Under the pieces are notes generated by a model. The model was not told where the DNA came from, ran no database searches, and saw only the letters and a program-made list of their open reading frames with translations. From sequence record NC_041972.1: a stretch of 64,000 nt of DNA; one strand, written 5' to 3'. Positions within the stretch are counted from its first letter, which is position 1. Each line of letters starts with the position of its first letter. Shown one piece after another: positions 3,001 through 61,413 of this stretch. Position numbers and translations under genes: made by a program.

Positions 3001-5677
3001 CCTGAGCAATCTCTGAAGCCGCCTCTTCTACAGCTTGACGACCAAAGCGACGTTGCAGTTCGGTGGTGGCATTACGCAACGCTTCCTTGCCACCGGATGC
3101 AGCATTCAACAGCGCTTGTTTCACCGCACTGGTGTCCGGACGGACTGAGCTGATCTTGCCAAACAAGTTACTGGCACTCTCACCCATGTTACGCAATGAA
3201 TCACCCAGACCGCCACTACCGCCTGCAGCGCCTGCCGCACCCGCACCACCAAAGCCGTTTACTCGATCGCGCAGACTTTGGCCAAGACTGTTATCCAAAC
3301 GACGAGCAATACGATTAACAGCAGCCTCCCCATATCGCGCACGAAGCTGCTGAAGCACCACTTGATAATATTCCGGACTGTTAGCTCGGGCTTGGGAAAG
3401 TTGTGCACGGACCTCCTCCTCTTGTTCACGGGTGAGTCGACCCCGCAGGTTACCCAGACTGTCTGTTACGCCACGACGCAGGTTATCCAGCGTCTCACGC
3501 CCCATCTCGCCGAGTTCTGCTCCAGGGTTAACATTACTGCCCCGTTCATTGGAATCTTCCCCTTCACGATCAGGACGATAGTTCGGGTTAGCAATGAACT
3601 TCTGCATCATCTCCCAGTACATCTCGTGATTAAAGACATCCTGGCCATTAACCCGTTTGATGACACCCATGTCTTTGAGCTGTGCCCGACTACCACTGTT
3701 GGCCATGGTATTCAGTGACTGCTCGACATTCGGCATATACTGCGACTGGGCCTGCATAACGTTAGACAGGTTGTTACGCATCTGTGCCAGTTCGGGTGCA
3801 TCGCCAATCTGATAATCACCAAAGGCTTTGGCCCGCCCGGTTGCTTCCCGAGTGTCGAAACGTTTGTGCAAGAACTCATTGATCTCCTGCACGGCTTCTT
3901 TATTGGCATTACCCCAACCACTGGACTTCAAGTAGGTGTTGACGTTGAAGCCATCACCCGCTTCAGCATCCCGGGCAAAACGCATCGCTAATGCCACACG
4001 GGCATTGGGTGAGAGTTCCTGATCGGGGTCGAGGGTTTCCACCATGGTGTTGAAGGAACCTGCGGCCGAGGAGAACTCATTGCGATTAAAGATCGACGAA
4101 CGCAGATCGACGTTCGCCCGTTTCTTGGAAGTGAAGCCACCCTGGATGTGGTTGAAGTGCACTTCCGACACCGACCCGACATCTGCTTCCAGTTTATTGG
4201 CAATCGCCGTTTGCTGGGCCAGTTGTTTAGTCAGTAAGCCTGGAATCACTTCCACCAATGAACGCCGTGACATCTGATCCCAAACAGCCGGTTCAGTCAG
4301 GTCTTTCACGCCAGGGTTGTGCAACCGAGTACGGTTACCCATGGAGGCCGGCAATTGAAAGAGGGCGTTATTCAGGAAGGGGTTGACGACGCGCTTTTGT
4401 AACCGCGTGTGCCATTTATTCCCCTCGGCATTCGGATCGAAGTTCTCATCAAACGACTGACGGTTACGTAACCAACCATTGATCAGACCCGGTGCCGCAT
4501 TTGAGTAATAGCTTAAGTCATGACCCATGCGGTTCAGACCCGGGTTACGCGACAGTGCAGGACGGGCTAAAGAGGAAAGCATCATCGGCAACATACCGAC
4601 CAGTCCTTGACCCGCCATCTGTCCGTAGTCACGGGCGCCAAGCGAACGCCCCATCATGCGGGCCTGTTGTGCACCCATCATGGCAGCACGGGCGGCAGCA
4701 ATGCCGCCCGAAGCGCGGTGGTTCATATCCTGGCTACGCTGATCCACCATGTTAAAGACATTGTCAAACAGACGGTTACCAAATTGCGAGACCGTACCAC
4801 CTAACCCACCCAGTGCACGTTTACGAATCAACTCACGGGCCGAGGCAGAATGACTCATCTTTTCGAAGTCAGTTAAGCCGGTATTTTTCACCAGACTTGA
4901 CATGGCGTCCAGACTGCGTTTGTAGAAACGTTCTTGCATCTTGCCAATTGACAACTGCAGTTTATACGAACGGTACTGGAGCTCTAATGACTTGCGCTGG
5001 TAGTTGGCAGTGAACTGCTCATTAAAGCCAACGGTACGGGCTGTGAGGCGATGGATGCCTTGCATGAAGGCCAGACTGTCTGCAGAGACGCTCGCTTGTC
5101 TGGTGGCGACTGCGGCGGTCTGTGCCATGCTCTCTTTATGCAGGGCCACAGCCAGCTGACTCGACTGCAGCGTAGCCTGCTGCATCATGGTGACGTAGTC
5201 ATCGTTCTCGTTACCGGTTGAGCCGTCGTCCAGACCGGGATCGGCAGGTTTGGTGCTGGAGACCGAATAATCGATGTCTTTATTCTCAGCCCAGACTTCA
5301 ATTTGCTTTAAGACCTTCTCCGGCAATTTCCCACCGTACATCGATAATGCATCGAGGGTTAGGTCTTTGATGTCATTGACAGAGTTACGGGTATTACTTT
5401 TAACTTTATCGTATAGGTCATCTTTGAATCTTGCTGCGCGATCTTTTGCATCAAACGCAGGCGAAAACGATGCGGGTAACAAAGAGCGAATGATACGCTG
5501 AGGAGTGCCTTTAGTGAACACTTCCTCTTTGGCACCAGTCCAAAGGCCTGCGGCGAACTCACGAATCGCCCCGCCTTTACCCTTCTTCTTCGTACTTGCA
5601 TCGTCACCGAAATCGAAGTCAAAGTCCAGGTCAAGGTCACCCAGATCTTCGTACTCGACTTTGACATTCTCGGCCAT
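1..5677 (-). CDS. Giant tail tape-measure-like virion protein with GH19-like muralytic domain (phiKZ gp181 position); C-terminus runs off the window
   Basis: ATG at 5677 with AAGGTG SD; starts MAENVKVEYEDLGDLDLDFDFDFGDD. The minus frame has no stops where I translated it by hand (2-290, 1680-2290, 5560-5677). It is absent from the ORF track, presumably because no stop falls in the window. Contains a Gly-rich hydrophobic segment and, near the edge, AMLLAQTHLESGGFSKLEENLRY (GH19-like). Divergent from the vRNAP genes, as in phiKZ-like phages. Confidence 0.85.
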   Translation of the reverse strand, partial: MAENVKVEYEDLGDLDLDFDFDFGDDASTKKKGKGGAIREFAAGLWTGAKEEVFTKGTPQRIIRSLLPASFSPAFDAKDRAARFKDDLYDKVKSNTRNSVNDIKDLTLDALSMYGGKLPEKVLKQIEVWAENKDIDYSVSSTKPADPGLDDGSTGNENDDYVTMMQQATLQSSQLAVALHKESMAQTAAVATRQASVSADSLAFMQGIHRLTARTVGFNEQFTANYQRKSLELQYRSYKLQLSIGKMQERFYKRSLDAMSSLVKNTGLTDFEKMSHSASARELIRKRALGGLGGTVSQFGNRLFDNVFNMVDQRSQDMNHRASGGIAAARAAMMGAQQARMMGRSLGARDYGQMAGQGLVGMLPMMLSSLARPALSRNPGLNRMGHDLSYYSNAAPGLINGWLRNRQSFDENFDPNAEGNKWHTRLQKRVVNPFLNNALFQLPASMGNRTRLHNPGVKDLTEPAVWDQMSRRSLVEVIPGLLTKQLAQQTAIANKLEADVGSVSEVHFNHIQGGFTSKKRANVDLRSSIFNRNEFSSAAGSFNTMVETLDPDQELSPNARVALAMRFARDAEAGDGFNVNTYLKSSGWGNANKEAVQEINEFLHKRFDTREATGRAKAFGDYQIGDAPELAQMRNNLSNVMQAQSQYMPNVEQSLNTMANSGSRAQLKDMGVIKRVNGQDVFNHEMYWEMMQKFIANPNYRPDREGEDSNERGSNVNPGAELGEMGRETLDNLRRGVTDSLGNLRGRLTREQEEEVRAQLSQARANSPEYYQVVLQQLRARYGEAAVNRIARRLDNSLGQSLRDRVNGFGGAGAAGAAGGSGGLGDSLRNMGESASNLFGKISSVRPDTSAVKQALLNAASGGKEALRNATTELQRRFGRQAVEEAASEIAQEAEVVRSSGVFNDGTADRASRTRLPSEGITAPDTGSASETAAIVQAQLDNNALLRETIGVLASVRDSVTATKDATIAQVTGDPDIMKDSVNERQGWLRKLSGRMSNQGKSSGLIRKVFKSLPNINSPVLTVAKWTTVMPAVLGFKATRGLWRMLRDKKREDASDPDHDGVRNNSVADLIRRRAQQKKEREEAQHAHDSDDHAKDKEKPTTLFGLVAGLFSSVTGLVSGIKEFGILGGLAKFLGLGWIGDIVKGIGSVISGGKGVMDELSDALGDDDDGGEEDGGRRRRRRRGGRRNRGGAGGGGGPRPRGGLIRRLAGKAARGVRGLGRGIVGRTGGMLGRGVAGNLKLLVKGGGIVTAGVSALEAWDSYKSGDNAGVAEAAGSGVGGILGGAAMGAAIGSVVPVVGTAIGAIAGGAIGALGGGAIGRSLYTWFNDPGLLQQMRLRQYGVPDNDSSHVSAILKLEAALEPYVKTTDDGYASLDPKAPIAQLGSLFVDDPNDRDQVEQFAGWFLHRFKPVYLTHKAVAKQVLPSQAFMDLDKSTDEAAKYEIAKRAQQFDESSDHPYMFTGRIFPDLNATDRKQTEALVKDVLDRLRNKAQKMTTGKSASVFATGMDKVASSRELSSDMVKAINPNGDIPELKTVGHKESSWFTGDRTVVSAGDLLGGLLPKAGQAMDDLTALRMKVYGLPTLDVDRVSTLLQLELVMANKIKFADNGATFDGKASDIYRVVAASFGLSPSNQWSYKSWEPWFTRRFLPAYLAFASTVYTQTGDSRPTLAVPKMPPELKFAAATAMTNAKYSDGVNAISVWTIKTSPWSTGELNDDASVVQNHLNNLKAQVKQAQYSAEAVKGGVQQRADGTTEKDWRKDSSGNMVNNQVKTSTGQVYTSQRQVTTYNPETGRIETAYGGGAAGGAAGAGGGIDNTGKVGPIKLGPGAEEGARILIREAMKSGITDKQELAMLLAQTHLESGGFSKLEENLRYKAETLMKLWPNRFPTLAA

Positions 5678-5719
5678 GTTAACACCTTTATCAAGTTGCT
5701 GCTAAAAGGATCACTCATC

Positions 5720-7336
5720 ATGCGGTCAGCATTACTACCTTTTAACATTAAGATTACTGACTCCAAGCAGATCCCCTGGAGAATGATGCGACCCGTTACG
5801 TCGCTCGATATTTACGACGGCCTAACCACTGAGCTGAACGATAACGGTCTGTACTCAATTCCCATTTTTGGACGCGTTGGATCGGAAGAACGTGATGAGC
5901 GATTTAGCTACATCCACATCAAGTGCGCCGTGTTCCATCCTGATATCTTCCGGGCACTGACTGCATTAAAGCAGATGTACGCAGGGATTCTCTCCGGTAA
6001 CGTGTACGCGACATGGAGCGAGGAAGAGAAGGACTTCATAAAATCTACCCCGCTTGATGGCGACACCGGTTTTTCCTTCTTTGTTAAACATTGGAAAAGC
6101 ATAGAATTTAAGCAGACTGGCTCGCCGGCCCGTAGCGACAAGATCGCCCTGGTCGAGAAGTTCAAGGATGTGGCCCTCTATCGTAACATCCTGGTCTCAC
6201 CAGCAGGTATCCGTGAAATCCAGATTGATGAGCGCGGGCGCACCATCGAGAACGAAGTCAACTCCCTGTACCGTAAGTTATTGTCAGCCGCGAACACCAT
6301 CACTGATGATCCTTCTGCCGCCGATACCTCACTGTATGACTCGGTGCGTTGGTCATTACAGAACCGCTTCAATGAGATCTACAAAAGTTACGCGGACATG
6401 CTGGAAGGTAAACGCGGGATCTTACAACAGAAGTGGGGTCGTCGTCGTATCTTCAACGGCACCCGAAACGTCATCACGGCCGCCCCTATCGGCACAGCCA
6501 CCCTCGGTGCGTTAAACTCCCCGCACATGAACGACACCCAGATCGGTCTGCATGAGCTGGCTCGTGGCGCATTGCCATTGACCATCCATGGTTTATTGAA
6601 TGGTTGGCTGAAGCATGTCTTTAATGACGGGGCGCGGATTCAGGTCATCAACCCGAAGACCCTGAAACAGGAGTCGGTGGAAGTCGACATCCCGACCGTC
6701 ACCAAGTGGACGACCCAGGAAGGCCTGGAGAAGCTTATCGCGGGCTTTAAAGATGTGACGTTGCGTAACAAGCCGATCACCATCCAAGGCCGCTACATCG
6801 GTCTGGTGTACGCTGACAACGATCATTTCCGGGTGTTCGGGGATATCGATGAATTACCTGCTTCGTTTAATCGCGAGCTGGTTCATCCGATGACCTACAC
6901 CGAGTTACTGTACCTGTGTTTGTACCAACGCTGGAACACTCTTTATATGCTGGTTACTCGTTACCCCATTACGGGTATGGGGTCGGTATATCAGACCAAA
7001 GCGTTTGTGCGCACAACCATCAAATCCAGCGTGAAGATCGAACTCGATGCCGAATGGAAACCCATTCCTGGCGCGTACGCTACCGCCTTCCCGATTCACG
7101 ATCGCTTTGCTGAGTTCATGGATTCGCTTTCAGTTCACCCCAGCCGCCTTGGCTTGCTCGGTGGTGACTACGACGGCGACACCATGTCAGCAACCATCCT
7201 GCTCGGTGACGATGTCCTGCGGGAATGTGCGATGTTGCTCTCACGGCGTGAATCGTACATTACCGGCCGCGGTGAGTTCTTGATCGATGTCACCAATGAA
7301 ACCTTGGACTTTACCCTCAAGGCGCTGACTTCTTAA
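5720..7336 (+). CDS. Virion RNA polymerase beta' subunit (catalytic fragment, phiKZ gp180-like)
   Basis: C-terminal LGGDYDGDTM (DxDGD Mg-binding motif), GRRRIFNGTRNVIT and N-terminal GLYSIPIFG beta'-like motifs. ATG at 5720 follows an AAGGA SD; the track starts at TTG 5696. Confidence 0.93.
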   Translation: MRSALLPFNIKITDSKQIPWRMMRPVTSLDIYDGLTTELNDNGLYSIPIFGRVGSEERDERFSYIHIKCAVFHPDIFRALTALKQMYAGILSGNVYATWSEEEKDFIKSTPLDGDTGFSFFVKHWKSIEFKQTGSPARSDKIALVEKFKDVALYRNILVSPAGIREIQIDERGRTIENEVNSLYRKLLSAANTITDDPSAADTSLYDSVRWSLQNRFNEIYKSYADMLEGKRGILQQKWGRRRIFNGTRNVITAAPIGTATLGALNSPHMNDTQIGLHELARGALPLTIHGLLNGWLKHVFNDGARIQVINPKTLKQESVEVDIPTVTKWTTQEGLEKLIAGFKDVTLRNKPITIQGRYIGLVYADNDHFRVFGDIDELPASFNRELVHPMTYTELLYLCLYQRWNTLYMLVTRYPITGMGSVYQTKAFVRTTIKSSVKIELDAEWKPIPGAYATAFPIHDRFAEFMDSLSVHPSRLGLLGGDYDGDTMSATILLGDDVLRECAMLLSRRESYITGRGEFLIDVTNETLDFTLKALTS

Positions 7337-43169: not shown

Positions 43170-43557
43170 GGTAGCCGTAAACGTAGTGGGTATGGTGGGG
43201 ATCAATGATAGCCCTGCTCGGTGAGTTTGTTAATCCCCGCCGTATCGCTTCGTAGAACACAGGGTCACTCATGACGTGGGGAGTGGCATAAACACCTGGG
43301 GTAGAAGTCCCAACTACATCCAAAATTCAATGACGCCTGTCACAGCCGCTTAAGCGCGCAGAAGATGACTTGTGTGCTCTGTGGCGATACTCGGACTTGC
43401 CAGCCTGTGGGGGCGGAGTAAAGTCTGGGTATTAGCCCGCTGCCATGTTACCACGTGAAAGTCGTGGGGGCGTCACCCTATTAGATCGATCGCTGACAGT
43501 ACGTGTTTATACTTACTTGCTTCTCTGGTTACGCTAACCTATCGTGAGGAGATAAAC

Positions 43558-43854
43558 ATGAATCTGTATATAGTCAAACGTGATGATAGAGCTGTGGATT
43601 TCGAACAGTGTGCGGGGATGGTGGTTGCTGCGTCGTCTGAGGATGAAGCTTTGCGATTGCACCCGATGGTTCTTGACTCTAGCCACCCAGACAATGCTGA
43701 GCGGCACCTGGCTGAATCGGCGGAGAACTTCGAGGATGGTACGTTGTACGGCTGGCCTAGCCAGGACCGTTTTCACGAACTGACCATCACCTTGATCGGA
43801 ACCACACACCTGACTATTCCGCAAGTTCTGTTACTCGACTATAAAGGCGGTTGA
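43558..43854 (+). CDS. Hypothetical protein, 98 aa
   Basis: GAGGAG SD. Confidence 0.8.
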   Translation: MNLYIVKRDDRAVDFEQCAGMVVAASSEDEALRLHPMVLDSSHPDNAERHLAESAENFEDGTLYGWPSQDRFHELTITLIGTTHLTIPQVLLLDYKGG

Positions 43855-43973
43855 TCTAAGTCCGGGGTAACACCCGGACACCCTATTCTGTTTTTCAGTA
43901 CATCACTGGAAGATACTATCGAGAGCAGCCACTCCGATACTCTAACTTATAAAGTTTAAAAAGGATAATAACG

Positions 43974-44627
43974 ATGTCAACCGAAATGACCATTTCTCGT
44001 GCACTGGCTACAGTGAAGTCTTTGAATGTCCGCATCAAAGATATCTCTAAAAAGCAGGTGCTGATTCTGCCAACCGCCGGTACTGGCGACATGCAATCGG
44101 TGATCAACAACAGCATCACTGTTACCGATGCTGAAGCCGCCATCCAGAATAACTGGAATGCGCTGAACGACATGATCAAAGTGCGTAACGATATTCGTGC
44201 GAAGATCATCCTGTCGAACGCCACAACCAAAGTGACCATCGCCGGTAAAGAATACACCATTGTTGAGGCATTGGACTTCCGCAACTCCCTGGTCGAAAAG
44301 AAAGACACGGTTGAGTGCCTGAAGCGCAACTACGACTCCACAATGAAAGTTCACCGCCAGCAGGGCGACATCTACGAAAAGCGTTTAAGCGATGTGCGCT
44401 CCGAAGCCCTGGCCTCCGGCAAGAAGTTTGATGAAGCCAGCTTGAAGACCTTCACCGATCCAATCGATGTGAAGATGAAACCAGGCCTGATCGATCCTCT
44501 GGGTATCTCAGCAGTTATTGAGAAGCTGGACAAAGAGATCGCTGACTTCGAACTTAACGCCGACTACGCGTTGTCCGAATCTAACGCAACGACCAAGATC
44601 ACTGTTGAACTTGGTAACATTGCTTAA
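43974..44627 (+). CDS. Alpha-helical/coiled-coil protein, 217 aa, adjacent to a structured ncRNA
   Basis: AAGGA SD; biased codons; helical heptads; internal repeat SNATTK(V/I)T at two positions. The layout recalls DIP1984-like helical proteins (unverified). Confidence 0.85.
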   Translation: MSTEMTISRALATVKSLNVRIKDISKKQVLILPTAGTGDMQSVINNSITVTDAEAAIQNNWNALNDMIKVRNDIRAKIILSNATTKVTIAGKEYTIVEALDFRNSLVEKKDTVECLKRNYDSTMKVHRQQGDIYEKRLSDVRSEALASGKKFDEASLKTFTDPIDVKMKPGLIDPLGISAVIEKLDKEIADFELNADYALSESNATTKITVELGNIA

Positions 44628-44723
44628 CCCGTATTAAAAGGCTTGTCTTCGTTTGACGAAAGATCAAACACCGCCTTCCTATTTGGCCGGATGGAAGTAA
44701 AATAACCGGCCAGCCATTATACA

Positions 44724-44789
44724 TCTGTAGGTCGCAGGTTCGATTCCTGTCGGGGTGAAACCCGTAGCTCAGTCGGTTAGAGCAGCAGA
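44724..44789 (+). ncRNA. Circularly permuted tRNA-like element (not a decoding tRNA)
   Basis: TCTGT-AGGTC-GCAGG-TTCGATT-CCTGT-CGGG-GTGAAA-CCCG-TA-GCTC-AGTCGGTTA-GAGC-A-GCAGA: anticodon stem 3' strand, variable loop, T arm, capped acceptor, D arm, anticodon stem 5' strand. Confidence 0.85.
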
Positions 44790-44862
44790 ACAACCGCTTA
44801 TGCTAAAAGCAATGATCTTTGGGATCATCAATGGTGTACTGTGAGCACCTTGAAATCACAGG

Positions 44863-44930
44863 TCTAAAGCTTAAAGCTATAACGTATAATGACTAAAGCT
44901 CTAAAGGTTTAAACTTATAACGTTAAAAAG
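44863..44930 (+). repeat. Degenerate 7-8-nt tandem repeats (TAAAG/TATAAC-type)
   Basis: TCTAAAG CTTAAAG CTATAAC GTATAAT GACTAAAG CTCTAAAG GTTTAAAC TTATAAC GTTAAAAAG. Confidence 0.75.
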
Positions 44931-45101
44931 ATCTACACTCCCTGATGACTGTGTTCGTCGGGCTATAACGCTAAAACCTTTTAAACAAATCCTGGGTATT
45001 CCTCCGCTGTGAGGATGGGTAATGTGGAGTGTGGTCTGCCACGTATCGCCGCCAGGCTGTCTTGCGGAGACAAGTCTTTCCCTTTTGCAATAGGTGACCT
45101 A

Positions 45102-45272
45102 ATGACAGGCACTGCATCAATGATCATTGAGCAACCACAACCGGAATTCAATATCCCGTTGAGGTCGCCTTATCCTACCCTTCATGACGTAAGGTTTTCT
45201 ATGTTCCCTGTTATGGGTGAACCTGAGAACGAAGGGTTCGAACAAGATTCAGAAACTGACGCATTACATTGA
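45102..45272 (+). CDS. Small hypothetical protein, 56 aa
   Basis: AGGTG SD before ATG 45102; the track's longer version overlaps the ncRNA. Confidence 0.5.
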   Translation: MTGTASMIIEQPQPEFNIPLRSPYPTLHDVRFSMFPVMGEPENEGFEQDSETDALH

Positions 45273-45313
45273 GGAGATTCAATCGCGCAGGTTCTTAACC
45301 GACTAAAGCCAGG

Positions 45314-45541
45314 GTGACTTGTGTTATCTTGGTAAAAGGTGAACGCGTCGTTACAGCGCATACGACTGAATGGGCCGATCCCCCCTTCGGAGTAATATTA
45401 GCCCAGATCCATTGCACACCAATAAGTCAATGGCTAGCCAGACACACAAAAAACTATTATGCTTCGACAGATGGTAGGTGCCTGATTACTACAATTCGAT
45501 TCGATACCTCAACTAAAAGGCGGACACAAGGGCCGTTATGA
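45314..45541 (+). CDS. Possible small hypothetical protein, 75 aa
   Basis: GTG start with weak SD; otherwise unsupported. Confidence 0.3.
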   Translation: MTCVILVKGERVVTAHTTEWADPPFGVILAQIHCTPISQWLARHTKNYYASTDGRCLITTIRFDTSTKRRTQGPL

Positions 45542-45878
45542 GTGAAGCACCAGGAAACTATACCTTGGTAAGGCCCCAGGCTTTTTATCCTTACCAAGGT
45601 TCTCTTTCTTTTACTACCTGATAATGGGTGGATGCCTTAGTCACCTTTCTTTCACAGAGGCAACAACCTAAGGCGTCTGCCCGCCCTATAACCCGAGTCG
45701 TCTAGCGACAAGACACCGTCAGACCCATTTGGTAACAGCCTAACTTACCTGTTACCCAACCTATGACGGAAACAGGTGGTTCAACTCCACCTCTTGGGTC
45801 TTAGGTATTGGCTTAGGCAAACTCCGTCGCGGCTTTACCCTCAATAGGCTGCGTTGCGTAAGTCAGTACCGTGCTGTG

Positions 45879-46033
45879 CGTCGTACTCCCTGATGAGGCG
45901 CCCGACGTTAAAAGGCACGAAACGGGGACAGAGGATACTCCATCGGTGATTGCAATCAACCACGCTGGGGTTTATACAGGCACTTGAGAGACACGCTGGT
46001 TTCTCGTTGCCTGTCCCTTTGTCCCGTCGGAGT
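45879..46033 (+). ncRNA. Type I hammerhead ribozyme
   Basis: CUGAUGA (45890-45896), stem II G...C, GAAA (45919-45922), stem III ACGGG(G)ACAGAGG/CCUUUGUCCCGU, cleavage triplet GUC (46026-46028), stem I ACUCC/GGAGU. Confidence 0.8.
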
Positions 46034-46435
46034 CCCTTGCGTTCCTGGAGGGATGACACCGCGTTAAGACTGATCCCCTTAACGAAGTTGCAATAGCCGG
46101 GGGTGATTCTTGCAAAGGTTACTCACAGCAGACTGCCTCCGCCAATTGCGGATGGCTTAGGCCCTCAGTCCGTCAGGAAGTTGTCGTTGAATAAGTGACA
46201 GCTGGACTAGGGTTGCATTATAACCCGGCAAGTGTGCAGCCTGTTTTTTCTTCATGTGTACCTGAACCGGTTCAGGAGCCTACAGATGAGGGAACGACGG
46301 GAAGCATATTGCTACCGATCATTTGCTGTGTGACCGGGCCAAGGATGGCATATACCGGAACCAGTAACCGTATTCAGCGCAGGTGCGCTTTCTCTTCCTT
46401 ATCTTGTGGTTAAACCGCGCCTGTCTGGATCATAT

Positions 46436-46466
46436 GTGCCGGGGTCACACCTGGCGCTTATGCCGT
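46436..46466 (+). terminator. Hairpin + TTATGCCG
   Basis: GTGCCGGG-GTCACA-CCTGGCGC then TTATGCCGTC; closes the RNA island. Confidence 0.65.
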
Positions 46467-46540
46467 CTGAGTTGTATCCTTTTTTACTCCTACATTACGA
46501 AGCTGATATACCCATCAATTCAATTTAAAGGAGTTTAGTT

Positions 46541-46963
46541 ATGAAGAACGTTACTATTGCTATTGGTCGTAATCCGCTGTCCAACCAGAAATGGATTCTG
46601 GATCAGATCGTGAGTCTGGTGAAGTCCGGTAAGTCCGACATCTTCATCGTCAATACCGACTCACGGGTTTCCACTGCGGTACTCAATGCCTTGAAAGAGT
46701 ATACGAAGGATGATGCGGAATACACTCGCTTGGTTGCTGAGAACGGTGTCATGTTCCACACAACCGAGACCGAAGACCTGCAAACGCTGGATGATGCTAA
46801 GATGAACAGCCGGTCGGCGATTCTGGCCAACATGCTGTTCAGCCTGCCATTGGTCAAACAGTGTCGTGATCTGGCGCGTCATCACGTCCCGGTCTTTGTG
46901 AGTGCCACACCTGCCATGTCTGGTAAGGTGCCGGCTTCCGCCCATACCAAGTTCCTCGATTAA
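46541..46963 (+). CDS. Hypothetical protein, 140 aa
   Basis: AAGGAG SD; CTACATTAC motif at 46490. Confidence 0.85.
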   Translation: MKNVTIAIGRNPLSNQKWILDQIVSLVKSGKSDIFIVNTDSRVSTAVLNALKEYTKDDAEYTRLVAENGVMFHTTETEDLQTLDDAKMNSRSAILANMLFSLPLVKQCRDLARHHVPVFVSATPAMSGKVPASAHTKFLD

Positions 46964-49661: not shown

Positions 49662-50636
49662 ATGTCAAAACGTTTAACCCGCATCTACGCTTGTGGCGGT
49701 GCTGCCATCAACATCACCGCGGCGCAGAAGGACCAGCACGATCAACTGGGCTTCTCTGACCTCAGCGTATCACGTATCGATACTTCGGATAAGAACATCA
49801 AACCAGGCATGTCACCGAACAGCGTCTACATCCTGGAAAACGCAGACGGTTCTGGTAAAGAGCGTAAGCACAACTACAAAGCGATCGTGGCCTCACTCGA
49901 ACAGATCCTGGCGATGCACAAACCGGGCGATTACAACATCGTCATGATGTCAGCCTCAGGCGGTTCTGGTTCGGTCATCGGTCCGGTAATCATTGGCGAA
50001 CTGCTGAAGCGTAAGATCCCAGTGGTTGCGCTGGTTGTGGGTACCATCGGTTCTGAAACTGAAACGCAGAACTCCATCAATACCCTGAAGTCCCTGGCCG
50101 GTGTCTCTGAAGCTCAGAAAGCCCCACTGGTGATGTCATACTTCCCGGTGAACCAGCACTTCGATCAGCGTGAAGTGGACAAGCAAGTCCTGACCACCAT
50201 GACGCTGTTGCTCAACCTGTTCGACTCGAAGAACATCGAAATCGATTACAAAGATATCGTGAACTTCCTGAACTACACCAACATCCGTAACACCCGCCCT
50301 GGCCTGGTTGGCCTCGAAACGTACAACGACGACGAACTGCAGACCATCGCTGGTACCTCGCCGTTGTCCATGGCGTCAGTGTTCAAAGATGATAACCGTC
50401 CGTTCCTGCCGGTTACCCCGGACTACCATGCCACCGGTACCCGTGACCAGGACATGAAAGATGAGCGTATGCAGTTCAATGCGCACTATGTCATTACCTC
50501 GGCGCCGGTTAAAATGGCGTTTGAAGATCTGAACAAACGTATGAAGCAGATCACTGATCAGCAACATACTCGCGGCCAGAACTTCAACCTGCTGGGTGAT
50601 GGCGACCAGGGTGACGATAACGGGATGTTCCTGTAA
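49662..50636 (+). CDS. phuZ: Phage tubulin PhuZ
   Basis: IYACGGAAINI (T1 loop), SGGSGSVIG (tubulin signature), acidic C-terminal DDNGMFL tail. Confidence 0.95.
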   Translation: MSKRLTRIYACGGAAINITAAQKDQHDQLGFSDLSVSRIDTSDKNIKPGMSPNSVYILENADGSGKERKHNYKAIVASLEQILAMHKPGDYNIVMMSASGGSGSVIGPVIIGELLKRKIPVVALVVGTIGSETETQNSINTLKSLAGVSEAQKAPLVMSYFPVNQHFDQREVDKQVLTTMTLLLNLFDSKNIEIDYKDIVNFLNYTNIRNTRPGLVGLETYNDDELQTIAGTSPLSMASVFKDDNRPFLPVTPDYHATGTRDQDMKDERMQFNAHYVITSAPVKMAFEDLNKRMKQITDQQHTRGQNFNLLGDGDQGDDNGMFL

Positions 50637-55772: not shown

Positions 55773-57884
55773 ATGGATTTATTCATTAACCACCCGAGTG
55801 AGTATAAACGCGATTACCGTATTTATCATCACTACGTTGAAGGAAAGGCACTTGCCATTTCCAAGATCACCGGCCGTCCGCTTGATGAAGCACGTGAGTA
55901 CGTTACCCGTGTTACCGGCGAGACCGGGAAGTTTGCGTTACAAGATCCGCGGGTTAAAATCCTGGTGCGGAACAAAGTGGGCGACCGTGAACTAAAGTAC
56001 ACCACCTTTAATAAGTTTCTGAAGGCCGTAGAAGACCGTGGTGCGATTTTATCACCGAGCCTGACTGCTTACCTACATCCGAAAGAGAAGGTCTCACAAT
56101 ACGCTGTATCGACTGATAAGAACATCAAAGCGCGTAAAGTGATTAAGCATGAGATGTTCATCGCCGAACAACGCGGTGACATGGTGACCAAGAACGTAAA
56201 AGAGATCATGCAGACTGGGCGTAAGCTCACCAACAACGGAATGTCCGGCGGGTTTTGTACCGCATCGACACCGTTCTTCTGCCGATCAGCCCACAGCTCA
56301 CTGACCTCCTGCTGTCGTAGTGCTACCAGTTCCACCAATGCCTTCAACGAGAAGTTCTTGGCCGGGAACCGCCACTACTACAGTCCCGAGATTACCATTG
56401 AGTCGATTACTACGCTGATCCGCTTCAGCGACCTGGAGAAAATCCAGGCGGTCATGACCGAGTTTAATCTGCAAGCACCAACCGTCACACAGACCATGGC
56501 CTGTATCTATCGCAGTACCCGGCGCTATTGGTCTGACAAGTACTTCATGGGGGTGATCTTAAAACTCATTGAAGGGTTGACGGATGTTGAGCGTGCGGCG
56601 TTCATGTTTGTCTCCGATCTCTATCACCTGCGTGAAGTCAACCCGGACTTTGTGCGCAAGTTCTTAATCGATCTGGCAGAGCGCAGTGAAGACCAGTTGG
56701 CTGACGATGTGAAGATGAAGGATGGGGATTGCCGTATCCTGGCGACCATGAAGTGTGCGGACGATATCGCGCGTATCGGGACAAAGAACCTGGAGCACAG
56801 CGAAGAGTTCAAAGCACGCCTGAAAGCGAACTATGTATTGAGTGAACGCAACATCACGCAATATGAATCGTTCATCCGCGCCTTCTTTGTTACCAAGAAC
56901 ACCCCGACCAGCATTGCCATGATGCCGCACCATGTGCGTGAAGTGGTATTGGCATCCGATACCGACTCCTCAATCTTTACCGAGCAGATCTGGATTGACT
57001 GGATTCAGCCAGACTACTCCAAACGCCAAGAACGTATCCAGGTAAACGCCGCAGTAACTTTCCTGATCTCGCAGCAGGTCGTGCATTTACTGGCAATCGT
57101 TTCCGGTAACATCGGGGTAGCGGACGAACATCTGTTCCGTCTGGCAATGAAGAACGAATACTACTTCGAAACGTTTGTGTTGACCAACATGGGTAAACAC
57201 TACTTTGCGACCCAGGCTGCCCGTGAAGGGAACTTCTTCCCGAAACCCAAGCTTGAGCTCAAGGGTGTGCACTTACGCAACTCTAACGTACCGAAAGAGA
57301 TTCGAGACCGCGGTAACAAACTGATCAACGACATCCTGGATAAGTCCAACGTCAATGAGCAGTTCTCGGTGGTAGATCTGTTAAACCAGGTTGGGGATAT
57401 AGAGCGCTTCATCATCAACTCCATTACCAAAGGCGAAACGATCTTCTTAACCAAAGCCACGATCAAGGATAAGGGGTCTTACGCTAAACCGTACAGCTCA
57501 AACTACTACCACTACTGTATGTGGCAGGAAGTCTTTGCTGAGAAATATGGTCAAGCACCGCCATTGCAATACATTGGTCTGAAAGCGAAGTTGGGCCTGA
57601 GCTCACAAACCGCCGTGAACGATTGGCTGGACAGCTTAGACGACCAAGCCCTGGCTGAGCGTATGCGTAAGTTCTTAGTGAAGTACGGCAAGAAGTCGAT
57701 CACCCAGGTGGTCATGCCGGCAGATATCGTGATGAACATGGGTGTGCCACCTGAGATCATTGCCGGTATCGATCTGCGTAACCTGATCATGGAGAACCTG
57801 TCCATGGTGTATTCGTGTCTTGAATCGCTAGGCCTTTATTACGTAAACGACAACGCAACCAAACTGGTATCTGACGAACATTAA
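55773..57884 (+). CDS. DNA polymerase, family B, polymerase-domain subunit (phiKZ gp50-like)
   Basis: Motif C SDTDS, motif B KLTNNGMSG, KHYFA...KLELKG; position two genes upstream of chimallin. Confidence 0.9.
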   Translation: MDLFINHPSEYKRDYRIYHHYVEGKALAISKITGRPLDEAREYVTRVTGETGKFALQDPRVKILVRNKVGDRELKYTTFNKFLKAVEDRGAILSPSLTAYLHPKEKVSQYAVSTDKNIKARKVIKHEMFIAEQRGDMVTKNVKEIMQTGRKLTNNGMSGGFCTASTPFFCRSAHSSLTSCCRSATSSTNAFNEKFLAGNRHYYSPEITIESITTLIRFSDLEKIQAVMTEFNLQAPTVTQTMACIYRSTRRYWSDKYFMGVILKLIEGLTDVERAAFMFVSDLYHLREVNPDFVRKFLIDLAERSEDQLADDVKMKDGDCRILATMKCADDIARIGTKNLEHSEEFKARLKANYVLSERNITQYESFIRAFFVTKNTPTSIAMMPHHVREVVLASDTDSSIFTEQIWIDWIQPDYSKRQERIQVNAAVTFLISQQVVHLLAIVSGNIGVADEHLFRLAMKNEYYFETFVLTNMGKHYFATQAAREGNFFPKPKLELKGVHLRNSNVPKEIRDRGNKLINDILDKSNVNEQFSVVDLLNQVGDIERFIINSITKGETIFLTKATIKDKGSYAKPYSSNYYHYCMWQEVFAEKYGQAPPLQYIGLKAKLGLSSQTAVNDWLDSLDDQALAERMRKFLVKYGKKSITQVVMPADIVMNMGVPPEIIAGIDLRNLIMENLSMVYSCLESLGLYYVNDNATKLVSDEH

Positions 57885-59277: not shown

Positions 59278-61413
59278 ATGAAAACTCCTGAAGGCGAAAA
59301 CAAGGCACAGGGTCAGCAGCCATCTGACCAGCAGCAGCCTAACAATTCGGCAATGGGTGATGCGCTACTACAAGCGCAACAGAGGCAGAGTCAGCAGCCA
59401 CAGCAGCAGCAAACTCCGCCTCAACAAGCGCCGCAGTCAGCACCTCAACCAGTGCAAGCAGCAACCCAGCAACAGCAACACACCCCACAATTTCATCAGA
59501 CTGCAGGTAACAGCACCGTGAACAACACAACTAACAACACCAACACCGAACAACAGCAGCCGCGTCAGTCACGCATTTACGGCATGAACGAACGCCGTTC
59601 TCGTATCTTCGACGCGACCGCGTTTGGTGAAAACTTTAAGATCGCGCTGGAAGCGACCAAAGAAGTGCTGGAAGGCTATGAAGATAAAGGTTTCAACAAA
59701 TCTTTCTTCCTGGTTCCCGTTGCTGATGCAACCCTGCACTGCAATGGCCTGGCGTATGCGTCTGTGTTCAACTTCGGCGGCAGCACCAAAGCAATCGTCT
59801 ATACCCTGATGCTGGAAAACACCGGCTCGCCACTGAAACCACAGCGCGGTAACGATCCACTGACGGGCGAACCGTTTGAGATCCCACGCATGACCGGTTC
59901 TCAGTACGACAACACCTACTGGGCTCGTGTAGCACAGCTGGTCGCGCACCGTGTTGGTAACAACGCAGAAGTGCTGGATGCTGGCGCCTGTGTGGTGCAC
60001 GCTGAGATGAAGTGGGACGACAAGTCTGCGATCAAACAGCTGCTGAACAACGCAGAAAACGCCACCATGGCGTATGCGAACAGCCTGTCTGGTTACCGTA
60101 TCGAACCACCATTCAACATCGCGCAGGAAGTGGACCCGAACATCGACCGCATCACCGCGGGCTTTAACTTCAATCCACAGCCGCTGTTCACTGTTGATGG
60201 TCAGCCGATCCGTAACGACGTCGAAGTGAAACTGTCTGCTTACGCAGAAGGCGCAGGCCAGGTTCAGACCACCGAAGCCATCACCACCGTGAACGGCTAT
60301 GTTGAGCTGATCGCTGCACCGCAGCAGCAGATGGGTTATCAGCAGCAGATGATGATGGGTATGAACCCGCAGCAGGCGATGCAGTTCTACCGTCGCTTCT
60401 ACCCGCAGTTCACCATCACTTCAACTGGTACCGGTATCTCTAACGCACAGGGTCCTGAGTTCCAGCTGCTGGCGCTGTTCGCTGCTTCACTGATTGGTGA
60501 AAACAGCAACTGGCACCATGCGTTTGCGCCGAAGATGGTAAACGGTGTCGATATCAACGATATCGGTGCGATCAACTACGAACTGAAAATGGGTCTGGAA
60601 AGCCCAGATGACCGTCCGAAGAAGATCATCACCAAAGACCACAGCTTCACCACGCAGGCTCTGCATCAGCTGCTGTACACCGCATGCCACGAATCCATGT
60701 CAATCGCGATCGACATCGAAGAGACCGGCACGCGTACCTGGGTTAACTCCATGCTGCTTCTGGCTGGCGGTCAACCAAACGGTAATGCTGCAGCACTGAG
60801 CCCACAGGGTCAGCAGGCGCACAAAGCGATCATCCAGGCGGCGAACAACCTGACCAACGGTGAGTTCAGCAAACACTTCACCGATCAGAACCAGCTGATT
60901 GCTGTACGTGACGGTACCCGTATTCAGGGTGGTTTCTACGTCTCTAAAGACAACCATCAGAAAATGGATATCCGTAACGTCGACCTGCTGGCGGTTCTGA
61001 ACTTCGTCGGTGAAACTGATCCGCGTATCGTGGAAGAGTGGAAAATCATCACCAGCTCTACTTCTGGTATGTCTACTCCGAAACGTGTCGCGCTGCGTCA
61101 GCAGAAACTGCAGCAGCTGCTGGGTGAGTCTTTCGTCCTGAAAGCTTACTACGAGCGTGTAGTGATCAACTGGGCATTCATGGATGCTCTGCGTAAAGCA
61201 ATCACTGCAGCAGGCCTGATCGTGCGTCCGGAAAACACCAACATGCAGTACAACGTACAGAGCTACGGCACGCCAATGGCGCAGCTGTACGGCATGCCTA
61301 CCAACATCGGCAGCTCACTGCAGCAGGGCGCTTACGCAACCGACAACCAAGGTCGCGTAGTGAACATGGCAGCGTTCCGTACTGGTGGTGCATTCGGTAC
61401 GTTCAACGGCTAA
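59278..61413 (+). CDS. chmA: Chimallin, major phage nucleus shell protein
   Basis: 711 aa; position between DNA polymerase and nvRNAP beta'; highly biased codons; early promoter upstream; Q-rich N-terminus. Confidence 0.88.
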   Translation: MKTPEGENKAQGQQPSDQQQPNNSAMGDALLQAQQRQSQQPQQQQTPPQQAPQSAPQPVQAATQQQQHTPQFHQTAGNSTVNNTTNNTNTEQQQPRQSRIYGMNERRSRIFDATAFGENFKIALEATKEVLEGYEDKGFNKSFFLVPVADATLHCNGLAYASVFNFGGSTKAIVYTLMLENTGSPLKPQRGNDPLTGEPFEIPRMTGSQYDNTYWARVAQLVAHRVGNNAEVLDAGACVVHAEMKWDDKSAIKQLLNNAENATMAYANSLSGYRIEPPFNIAQEVDPNIDRITAGFNFNPQPLFTVDGQPIRNDVEVKLSAYAEGAGQVQTTEAITTVNGYVELIAAPQQQMGYQQQMMMGMNPQQAMQFYRRFYPQFTITSTGTGISNAQGPEFQLLALFAASLIGENSNWHHAFAPKMVNGVDINDIGAINYELKMGLESPDDRPKKIITKDHSFTTQALHQLLYTACHESMSIAIDIEETGTRTWVNSMLLLAGGQPNGNAAALSPQGQQAHKAIIQAANNLTNGEFSKHFTDQNQLIAVRDGTRIQGGFYVSKDNHQKMDIRNVDLLAVLNFVGETDPRIVEEWKIITSSTSGMSTPKRVALRQQKLQQLLGESFVLKAYYERVVINWAFMDALRKAITAAGLIVRPENTNMQYNVQSYGTPMAQLYGMPTNIGSSLQQGAYATDNQGRVVNMAAFRTGGAFGTFNG

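Follow-up and report, generated by a model that had tools for sequence, protein, structure and literature searches.

A structured RNA of about 452 nucleotides (nt) and the gene beside it, which encodes a protein of 217 amino acids (aa), form a fixed pair in phages carrying tRNA sets. The pair is described here from a 64,000-nt stretch of sequence record NC_041972.1 (the window, meaning this whole stretch), which is identical to Erwinia phage vB_EamM_Deimos-Minion, an Agricanvirus with a 273.5 kb genome and a nucleus-forming jumbo phage; record position 167500 corresponds to window position 43500. Short repeats downstream of the gene are the single-stranded core of this conserved RNA, and similar units precede the gene. 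RNA and protein gene together represent a widespread RNA family with a dedicated protein partner gene that is apparently undescribed. The gene is the following open reading frame (ORF).

43974-44627, + strand: ORF of the 217-aa protein, Deimos-Minion gp207, T5.085 family, PHROG 1491

The RNA and the protein gene occur together across phage lineages

We inspected the surroundings of the gene in 27 lineages, 21 of which were chosen, while the other six were homologues taken at intervals from library matches with their context disregarded. The chosen set includes the T5-like phage AKFV33 (with the T5.085 homologue), My1, the rV5-like phages NINP13076 and NDO71, Pseudomonas phages Milchi and phiK7A1, Vibrio phages pVp-1 and Brizo, Bacillus phage BC-T25, Clostridium phage phiCD211, Salmonella phage SE131, and several metagenomic contigs. 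The RNA with its array adjoins the gene homologue in 27 of 27 lineages, as far as the contigs reach, and each inspected homologue is flanked by an unannotated gap of 300-900 nt that holds the same set of elements. An initial annotation of the window, made from the sequence alone, had proposed the gene and the repeats as one module and had named homologous genes without flanking repeats or RNA as evidence to the contrary; when this was checked, all 27 lineages had both.

The RNA lies downstream of the gene in 26 lineages and upstream in L140, which argues against a purely 3' untranslated region (3'UTR) role. In L140 the RNA, with a tRNA-like module, occupies 5080-5330 and the gene 5380-6039, and twenty tRNA genes follow within 8 kb.

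Searching in the reverse direction with a pattern for the 3' domain of the RNA returned 120 IMG/VR loci, mostly chance matches. Ten of these also had array features, and the gene stands beside the RNA in eight of the ten, the contig being cut off on that side in the other two. In 440 records, T5 and BF23 among them, the T5-like form of the RNA recurs at nucleotide identities of at least 89%, in gene-free sequence. Homologues of the protein occur in 724 of 50,697 phage records, and the family comprises 3614 clusters at 50% identity in a large protein library.

Architecture of the structured RNA

A consensus fold was computed with RNAalifold from seven RNAs, namely those of Deimos-Minion, AH06, three metagenomic jumbo contigs, pEa_SNUABM_37, and SA002; the proteins of the six relatives are 76% to 46% identical to that of Deimos-Minion. 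The alignment of the seven downstream regions folds into one closed RNA, which in Deimos-Minion spans 44637-45088 and begins 10 nt 3' of the stop codon. Given this short distance and the lack of an intervening terminator, the gene and the RNA probably share a transcript. Its parts, with the support of the consensus fold or the single-sequence minimum free energy (MFE) fold where noted, are as follows.

44637-44652, + strand: 5' strand of the terminal stem (AAAGGCUUGUCUUCGU), 16 base pairs with 45064-45079; consensus and MFE fold
44675-44712, + strand: H-type pseudoknot, CUUCC-uauu-UGGCCGG-au-GGAAG-uaaaauaa-CCGGCCA
44725-44789, + strand: permuted tRNA-like module with T arm, closed acceptor-like hairpin, and D arm, joined by an anticodon-stem-like helix
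44790-44859, + strand: variable linker with local hairpins (AUGAUC...GAUCAU, 44813-44830); MFE fold
44860-44934, + strand: main array; a loop, closed by AGGUCU/AGAUCU in Deimos-Minion, that contains nine units 6-9 nt long (44864-44929)
44940-44962, + strand: inter-array hairpin (CCC-ugau-GAC ... GUC-GGG); consensus columns 360-364 / 372-376 and MFE fold
44963-44986, + strand: second array, three units, CTATAAC GCTAAAAC CTTTTAAAC, including the conserved AAACCUUU
44987-45059, + strand: 3' domain, AAAUCC, then a helix of CCUGG (44991-44995) with CCAGG (45052-45056), then CUG
45064-45088, + strand: 3' strand of the terminal stem (GCGGAGACAAGUCUUU) and U-rich tail (CCCUUUUGC); consensus and MFE fold

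Both the terminal stem and the tRNA-like arms also appear in the MFE fold, which has a z-score of -2.9. In the alignment, the terminal stem carries compensatory changes at columns 28-30 / 491-493 and others (e.g. UCU/AGA, CUC/GAG, CUU/AAG, and UUU/AAA), and the U-rich tail follows it in all jumbo relatives. A helix search found terminal stems of unrelated sequence in 18 of 21 lineages. The arms of the tRNA-like module covary across the seven phages (e.g. CGGGG/CCCG vs UAGCC/GGCUA), while the linker that follows is poorly conserved among sub-lineages. Covariation was also quantified for the CCUGG/CCAGG helix of the 3' domain in 17 lineages: 94% of cells pair, 13 cells are changed on both sides, the covariation score is reached by none of 500 shuffles, and slid controls pair in 20-53% of cells.

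Within the first 230 nt after the stop codon, a search recovered the same pseudoknot topology, built from other stem sequences, in jumbo, T5-like, My1, rV5-like, Vibrio, and metagenomic lineages, a recurrence that rests on a table selected for pairing, as the MAFFT alignment left the stems out of register. Loop 3 is A-rich and UAAAUAA-like in every lineage with this topology. In most lineages the two strands of stem 1 (44675-44697 in Deimos-Minion) are CCUCC-like and GGAGG(U)-like, resembling an anti-Shine-Dalgarno:Shine-Dalgarno duplex; no start codon lies 3' of the strand that resembles a Shine-Dalgarno (SD) sequence.

The RNA family as a whole is built from a stem that closes its ends, a pseudoknot, a slot that holds a tRNA, a tRNA-like module, or a hairpin, about 5-12 repeat units at 7-8 nt, and the 3' domain.

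Repeat units in the RNA and upstream of the gene

The initial annotation had pointed to three repeat sites, one abutting the ribosome-binding site (RBS) of the gene and two downstream, and inspection of the sequence located all of them. The upstream site is in the 5' untranslated region (5'UTR) of the gene.

43940-43963, + strand: three repeat-like units in the 5'UTR, CTCTAAC TTATAAAG TTTAAAAAG, running into the SD

The SD itself is AAGGA (43961-43965), and the ATG follows at 43974. The units of the main array (44864-44929) read CTAAAG CTTAAAG CTATAAC GTATAAT GACTAAAG CTCTAAAG GTTTAAAC TTATAAC GTTAAAAAG, which corresponds to two unit types, NNNAAAG and YUAUAAC. This unit pattern is retained, with drifting variable positions, in AH06, pEa_SNUABM_37, SA002, and more distant phages, and the second array is kept in all jumbo relatives.

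The arrays are regularly spaced. The autocorrelation of A at lags 7 and 8 in the array is 0.41-0.42, a value reached by two of 200 shuffles. Across the arrays of 24 related RNAs, with a mean of about nine units each, spacings of 7-8 nt make up 55% of the distances between unit ends, compared to 10% in shuffles, and a further 12% are 14-15 nt.

The array shows no conserved pairing in the consensus fold; the prediction is of a single-stranded stretch enclosed by an RNA that also bears the tRNA-like module, in agreement with the earlier suggestion of a repeat-carrying RNA with a tRNA mimic. The loop closure proposed alongside it, AGGTCT (44860-44865) with AGATCT (44929-44934), can form in Deimos-Minion, but the exact helix is lost in AH06; in L006, L009, SA002, pEa_SNUABM_37, and AKFV33 the array is closed by different short helices, as read by eye. 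Within the arrays, AAAGGUUU (44904-44911) is exactly complementary to AAACCUUU (44974-44981) of the second array, and both are kept in all jumbo relatives. The CCUUU of the second array could, as judged by eye, also pair with the SD of the gene (43961-43965).

We compared the 45-nt 5'UTR with the RNA. The best ungapped match aligns AACTTATAAAGTTTAAAA with AACTTATAACGTTAAAAA, and none of 300 composition-preserving shuffles of the UTR reached its score. The string common to the 5'UTR and the array is AACTTATAA[A/C]GTT(T)AAAA, and TTAAAAAG has just two occurrences on the window's + strand, of which one is at the RBS and the other in the array. Such common strings are lineage-specific, with 16/18 matching positions in Deimos-Minion, 13/13 in L006, and 10/10 in AKFV33. 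Within the enterobacterial jumbo clade the UTR-array similarity reaches significance (p <0.003 to 0.04) except in SA002 (0.10), and it is marginal in the T5-like AKFV33 (p 0.037). A 5'UTR 18-mer (TTATAAAGTTTAAAAAGG) is unique in the window and is kept in AH06 and L006-L009, and partly in pEa_SNUABM_37 and SA002. We considered whether the UTR units are a repeated phage promoter and rejected this, given the uniqueness of the 18-mer and the lack of an excess of sigma-70-like sites.

The candidate protein partner

The 217-aa protein matches PHROG 1491 (expect value, E, 1e-72). Two features attributed to it earlier, an internal repeat and long helices, are both borne out: SNATTKVT occupies residues 81-88 and SNATTKIT residues 203-210, and an AlphaFold2 model (mean predicted local distance difference test score, pLDDT, 86.6) is a helical bundle with helices at 50-84, 96-147, and 178-206 and a small sheet formed by the N-terminal strand, a hairpin at 86-95, and the C-terminal strand.

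Scans of the protein against Pfam and NCBIfam gave no informative match. Across the family, PF20935 (DUF6847, a domain of unknown function) matches four of 28 members, with a best E of 9.5e-4, and does not match the Deimos-Minion protein. The family profile finds the PDB entry 3KDQ (DIP1984, of unknown function; E 0.013), which is also the top Foldseek match (E 4e-3, TM score 0.39/0.53); sequence and fold searches of the PDB revealed no known neighbour except 3KDQ / DUF6847, and a search of a viral fold library only uncharacterised homologues. The protein is probably a distant relative of DUF6847/DIP1984.

RefSeq names gp207 a 'tail fiber protein'. We rejected the tail fibre identity implied by PHROG 1491 and the RefSeq name, since the predicted structure is a helical bundle and fold searches gave no fibre match; the label seems to be a mistaken annotation, by now copied into hundreds of phage records. 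In T5-like phages the gene belongs to the early region, with RNase H, thymidylate synthase, and tRNAs as its neighbours. In the examined passages of the proteomics paper on RAY and Deimos-Minion, gp207 is named only as the RAY number of a different protein.

Association with tRNA genes and tRNA-like modules

The gene-RNA pair usually lies within or beside tRNA clusters, and the RNA itself has a slot between the pseudoknot and the array with variable content. The slot holds the permuted tRNA-like module in jumbo phages and L140, a small hairpin in T5-likes, and a tRNA gene called by ARAGORN in L143 (tRNA-Arg tct, 1211-1286) and L144 (called tRNA-Lys ctt, 1795-1888). The tRNA-like module is missing in T5-likes, My1, and rV5-likes.

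In Deimos-Minion the module matches YrlA (RF02553) with 44.5 bits (E 4e-8; model positions 23-87 of 114), short of the gathering score of 69, and the match recurs in AH06, pEa_SNUABM_37, SA002, and L007, with 32-42 bits in these relatives. A tRNA or transfer-messenger RNA (tmRNA), permuted forms included, was rejected as the identity of the RNA: ARAGORN finds none in the window, and the array has stops in all frames with no tag ORF.

Genomic setting

Three genes of the jumbo phage lie further along the window.

49662-50636: PhuZ-type tubulin gene, about 5 kb from the array
55773-57884: divergent family B polymerase gene
59278-61413: chimallin gene

Between the stop codon of the 217-aa gene and the next solid gene (46541) there are 1.9 kb with short ORFs only. 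The part of this gap that follows the RNA, 45090-46540, contains the small ORF gp208 (ATG at 45102, PHROG 10783) and is otherwise non-coding; the non-coding part aligns with AH06 at 81% identity (megablast), and AH06 has an additional ORF of 172 aa (PHROG 2586) inserted in the corresponding region. This region may hold further RNAs.

Upstream of the gene, 43853-43900 and 43925-43940 hold two further features. After gp206 there is a hairpin and then a T run (GTCCGGGgtaacaCCCGGAC...TTTTT), a terminator-like arrangement. Directly upstream of the 5'UTR units lies GAGAGCAGCCACTC, which is kept in AH06 and L006-L009 and may be the promoter of the gene. Further upstream, at 43235-43345, Deimos-Minion has about 90 nt unrelated to the sequence in RAY (L005 2276-2353), where a tRNA-Asn is found between flanks that align; this difference agrees with a published remark that tRNA-Asn is present in only some such phages. 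The tRNA-Asn of RAY, which lies upstream of the gene, was rejected as a counterpart of the downstream structured RNA.

Proposed mechanism and alternative explanations

We tentatively read the conserved RNA-gene pair as an RNA-protein particle in which the protein sits on the array, with feedback through the UTR units in the lineages that have them; this may well be correct, yet we place it somewhat short of probable. Several copies of the DUF6847-like protein would bind the array, one per 7-8 nt unit, making contact through the conserved SNATT strands at one end of the predicted helical bundle, and the protein-coated array would constitute the particle. In the jumbo clade, and perhaps in T5-likes, surplus protein would bind the two or three units by the SD and repress its own translation. 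More speculatively, RNase P cleavage at the slot with its tRNA or tRNA-like module might split the RNA into two pieces that the terminal stem keeps together, and the particle might act on tRNA or translation.

A more far-reaching version is possible but doubtful. It supposes an overlooked, widespread phage RNA-protein particle whose RNA, closed and 350-450 nt long, has room for a tRNA or tRNA mimic in its slot and a single-stranded array coated by a DUF6847-like protein at 7-8 nt intervals. The genes for it would lie in tRNA clusters, in T5-like, rV5-like, jumbo, and Gram-positive phages alike, and the particle would act on the tRNA pool or translation, for example by guarding or presenting tRNAs against host tRNA-targeting defence.

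Several observations weigh against a protein-coated RNA. The adjacency of gene and RNA could reflect shared function or regulation without physical contact. Searches of Pfam, NCBIfam, and the PDB (sequence and fold) detected no RNA-binding fold or domain in the protein, and the family is near-neutral to acidic (median isoelectric point 5.9), not basic. The SNATT motifs are invariant even where the array units differ (Vibrio phages and SE131), and no co-variation between SNATT and unit type was seen. On the RNA side, the near-complete pairing of terminal stems in the helix search (0.93-1.00) arises partly by construction, so that their unbiased support is the consensus fold. Protein binding and polymerisation, which the initial annotation had also envisaged, are what we infer; the filament it described is not supported. 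Its proposal that units at the RBS mediate autorepression is weakened: the shuffle test gives significant UTR-array similarity only in the jumbo clade, a marginal value in T5-likes, and none, or none of significance, in ten further lineages. Autorepression can therefore not serve as the logic of the whole family, and universal UTR mimicry was rejected.

A rather unlikely alternative is that the RNA works with host or other phage factors. The slot would then recruit tRNA enzymes (RNase P, CCA-adding, or modification enzymes) or, in the manner of Y RNAs, Ro/Rsr-PNPase, the A-rich array would dock or divert a general single-strand binder such as ribosomal protein S1, Hfq, RNase E, or a phage single-strand-binding protein (SSB), and the 217-aa protein would be syntenic through a shared tRNA or early-gene cluster. 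The YrlA-like module fits such a role, YrlA RNAs being substrates of tRNA enzymes and RNase P (PMC4201824), as does the use of a pseudoknot with UAAA repeats as an SSB target in T4 (PMC535899), and the neighbouring protein is not basic. However, array and protein are always present, including in the T5-likes, My1, and rV5-likes that lack the tRNA-like module. No TROVE/Ro60 protein is encoded by the 25 window ORFs scanned, which include all 18 of the longest non-nested ones (>300 aa) and the neighbours of the RNA, the rest of the genome and the host not having been scanned. The linkage to one protein family over Gram-negative and Gram-positive phages is also tighter than usual cluster synteny.

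We find it less likely still that the RNA is a cis-acting element, a large structured 3'UTR or leader that sets the stability, termination, or processing of the mRNA and of neighbouring tRNA precursors, with the array as a zone of RNase E entry or processing and the stem and U tail as a terminator. Its position 10 nt after the stop codon and the U-rich tail after the terminal stem agree with this, tRNAs directly follow the RNA in rV5-likes, L115, and L092, and the pairing of AAAGGUUU with AAACCUUU, the latter of which could mask the SD (by eye), would also suit this reading. Against these stand the order in L140, where the RNA precedes the gene, and an apparent terminator hairpin between gene and RNA in My1 (by eye); moreover, a pseudoknot, a closed 3' domain, and a regular array exceed what a terminator or stabiliser needs, and conservation reaches hosts with differing RNases. 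That the repeats are instead DNA iterons for a DNA-binding protein, as in a centromere-like site, an origin, or a promoter cluster, we consider very improbable. Heptad arrays bound by small proteins are known in plasmids (e.g. omega protein), and the PhuZ gene is nearby, but the units are degenerate, strand-specific, and always on the transcribed strand inside an RNA with covarying helices, T5-likes have no tubulin, and no promoter-like excess is seen.

If the protein does have a dedicated RNA partner, this would give the DUF its first functional handle and define a new class of phage ribonucleoprotein. With the pair in tRNA clusters and a slot that can bear a tRNA, it may bear on the expression, protection, or use of phage tRNA sets. 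The pair has remained unannotated although T5 is a classical model phage and nucleus-forming jumbo phages are intensely studied.

Comparison with known systems

Rfam 15 gave no match in the window at gathering score; within 44500-46700, at E up to 10, nothing but the sub-threshold YrlA match appeared. In nine related loci, at E up to 0.1, only tRNAs, YrlA, one tRNA-Sec, one Plastid-ycf2, and weak hammerhead matches were returned. The last, type III matches of 28-30 bits against a gathering score of 48.5, occupy equivalent positions in pEa_SNUABM_37 (L003 8144-8196) and SA002 (L004 8045-8097). Of the records listed among the 440 T5-like ones, none has an RNA feature annotated there and most have no feature at all; a few carry a promoter or short hypothetical ORFs. 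No paper on T5.085, DUF6847, or phrog_1491 turned up in literature searches. One published catalogue comprises some 10,000 unnamed candidate phage RNAs (PMC10690425); text searches of it returned nothing corresponding to this RNA, which the catalogue may nevertheless include.

YrlA RNAs are also found in phages (PMC4201824). Like the phage RNA, the RNA of the YrlA/Ro60-Rsr system has a stem that joins its two ends and a permuted tRNA-like domain (T arm, closed acceptor, D arm). The phage RNA is, however, four times longer, scores under the gathering threshold, and carries its tRNA-like module only optionally, and Y RNAs have no counterpart of the pseudoknot, the array, or the 3' domain. With respect to the Ro60-binding helix of YrlA, the terminal-stem sequence of the phage RNA differs in every lineage.

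GOLLD and ROOL are large structured phage-associated RNAs of unknown function, often near tRNA genes. The RNA described here matches neither in Rfam and differs from them in its smaller size, its architecture, and its dedicated neighbouring protein gene.

The initial annotation had likened the repeats to CsrA/CsrB, and one RNA with many copies of a short motif that recurs at ribosome-binding sites does recall CsrB/RsmZ. The CsrA motif is GGA in hairpin loops, whereas the units here are A-rich, lack GGA, are single-stranded, and have a fixed spacing of 7-8 nt. Pfam and NCBIfam gave no match to a CsrA-family protein. With neither a GGA-in-hairpin motif nor a CsrA-like protein, the comparison applies in the loosest sense only, and feedback of the ribosomal-protein type or the T4 gene 32 operator would be the better analogies.

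In ribosomal-protein feedback (the Nomura model), a structural protein with a primary site on RNA represses its own mRNA, whose leader is a mimic of that site. As an analogy, this would fit the relation between UTR units and array best, although there is no homology and the mimic is present in some lineages only.

In the operator of T4 gene 32, a pseudoknot precedes an unstructured A/U-rich stretch of UUAAA/UAAA repeats that takes in the RBS; gp32 is thought to nucleate on the pseudoknot and then bind cooperatively, repressing its own synthesis (PMC535899). A pseudoknot and unpaired UAAA-type repeats are likewise combined in the phage RNA. The T4 operator lies wholly in the 5' leader and overlaps the RBS, whereas here the pseudoknot and main array are 3' of the gene, and only two or three units, without a pseudoknot, stand at the RBS in some lineages. 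The proteins differ too, gp32 being an SSB with an oligonucleotide/oligosaccharide-binding fold (OB-fold) and the candidate here a predicted helical, DUF6847-like protein. Taken as an analogy, the T4 gene 32 operator appears to offer the closest documented logic for the RNA-gene pair.

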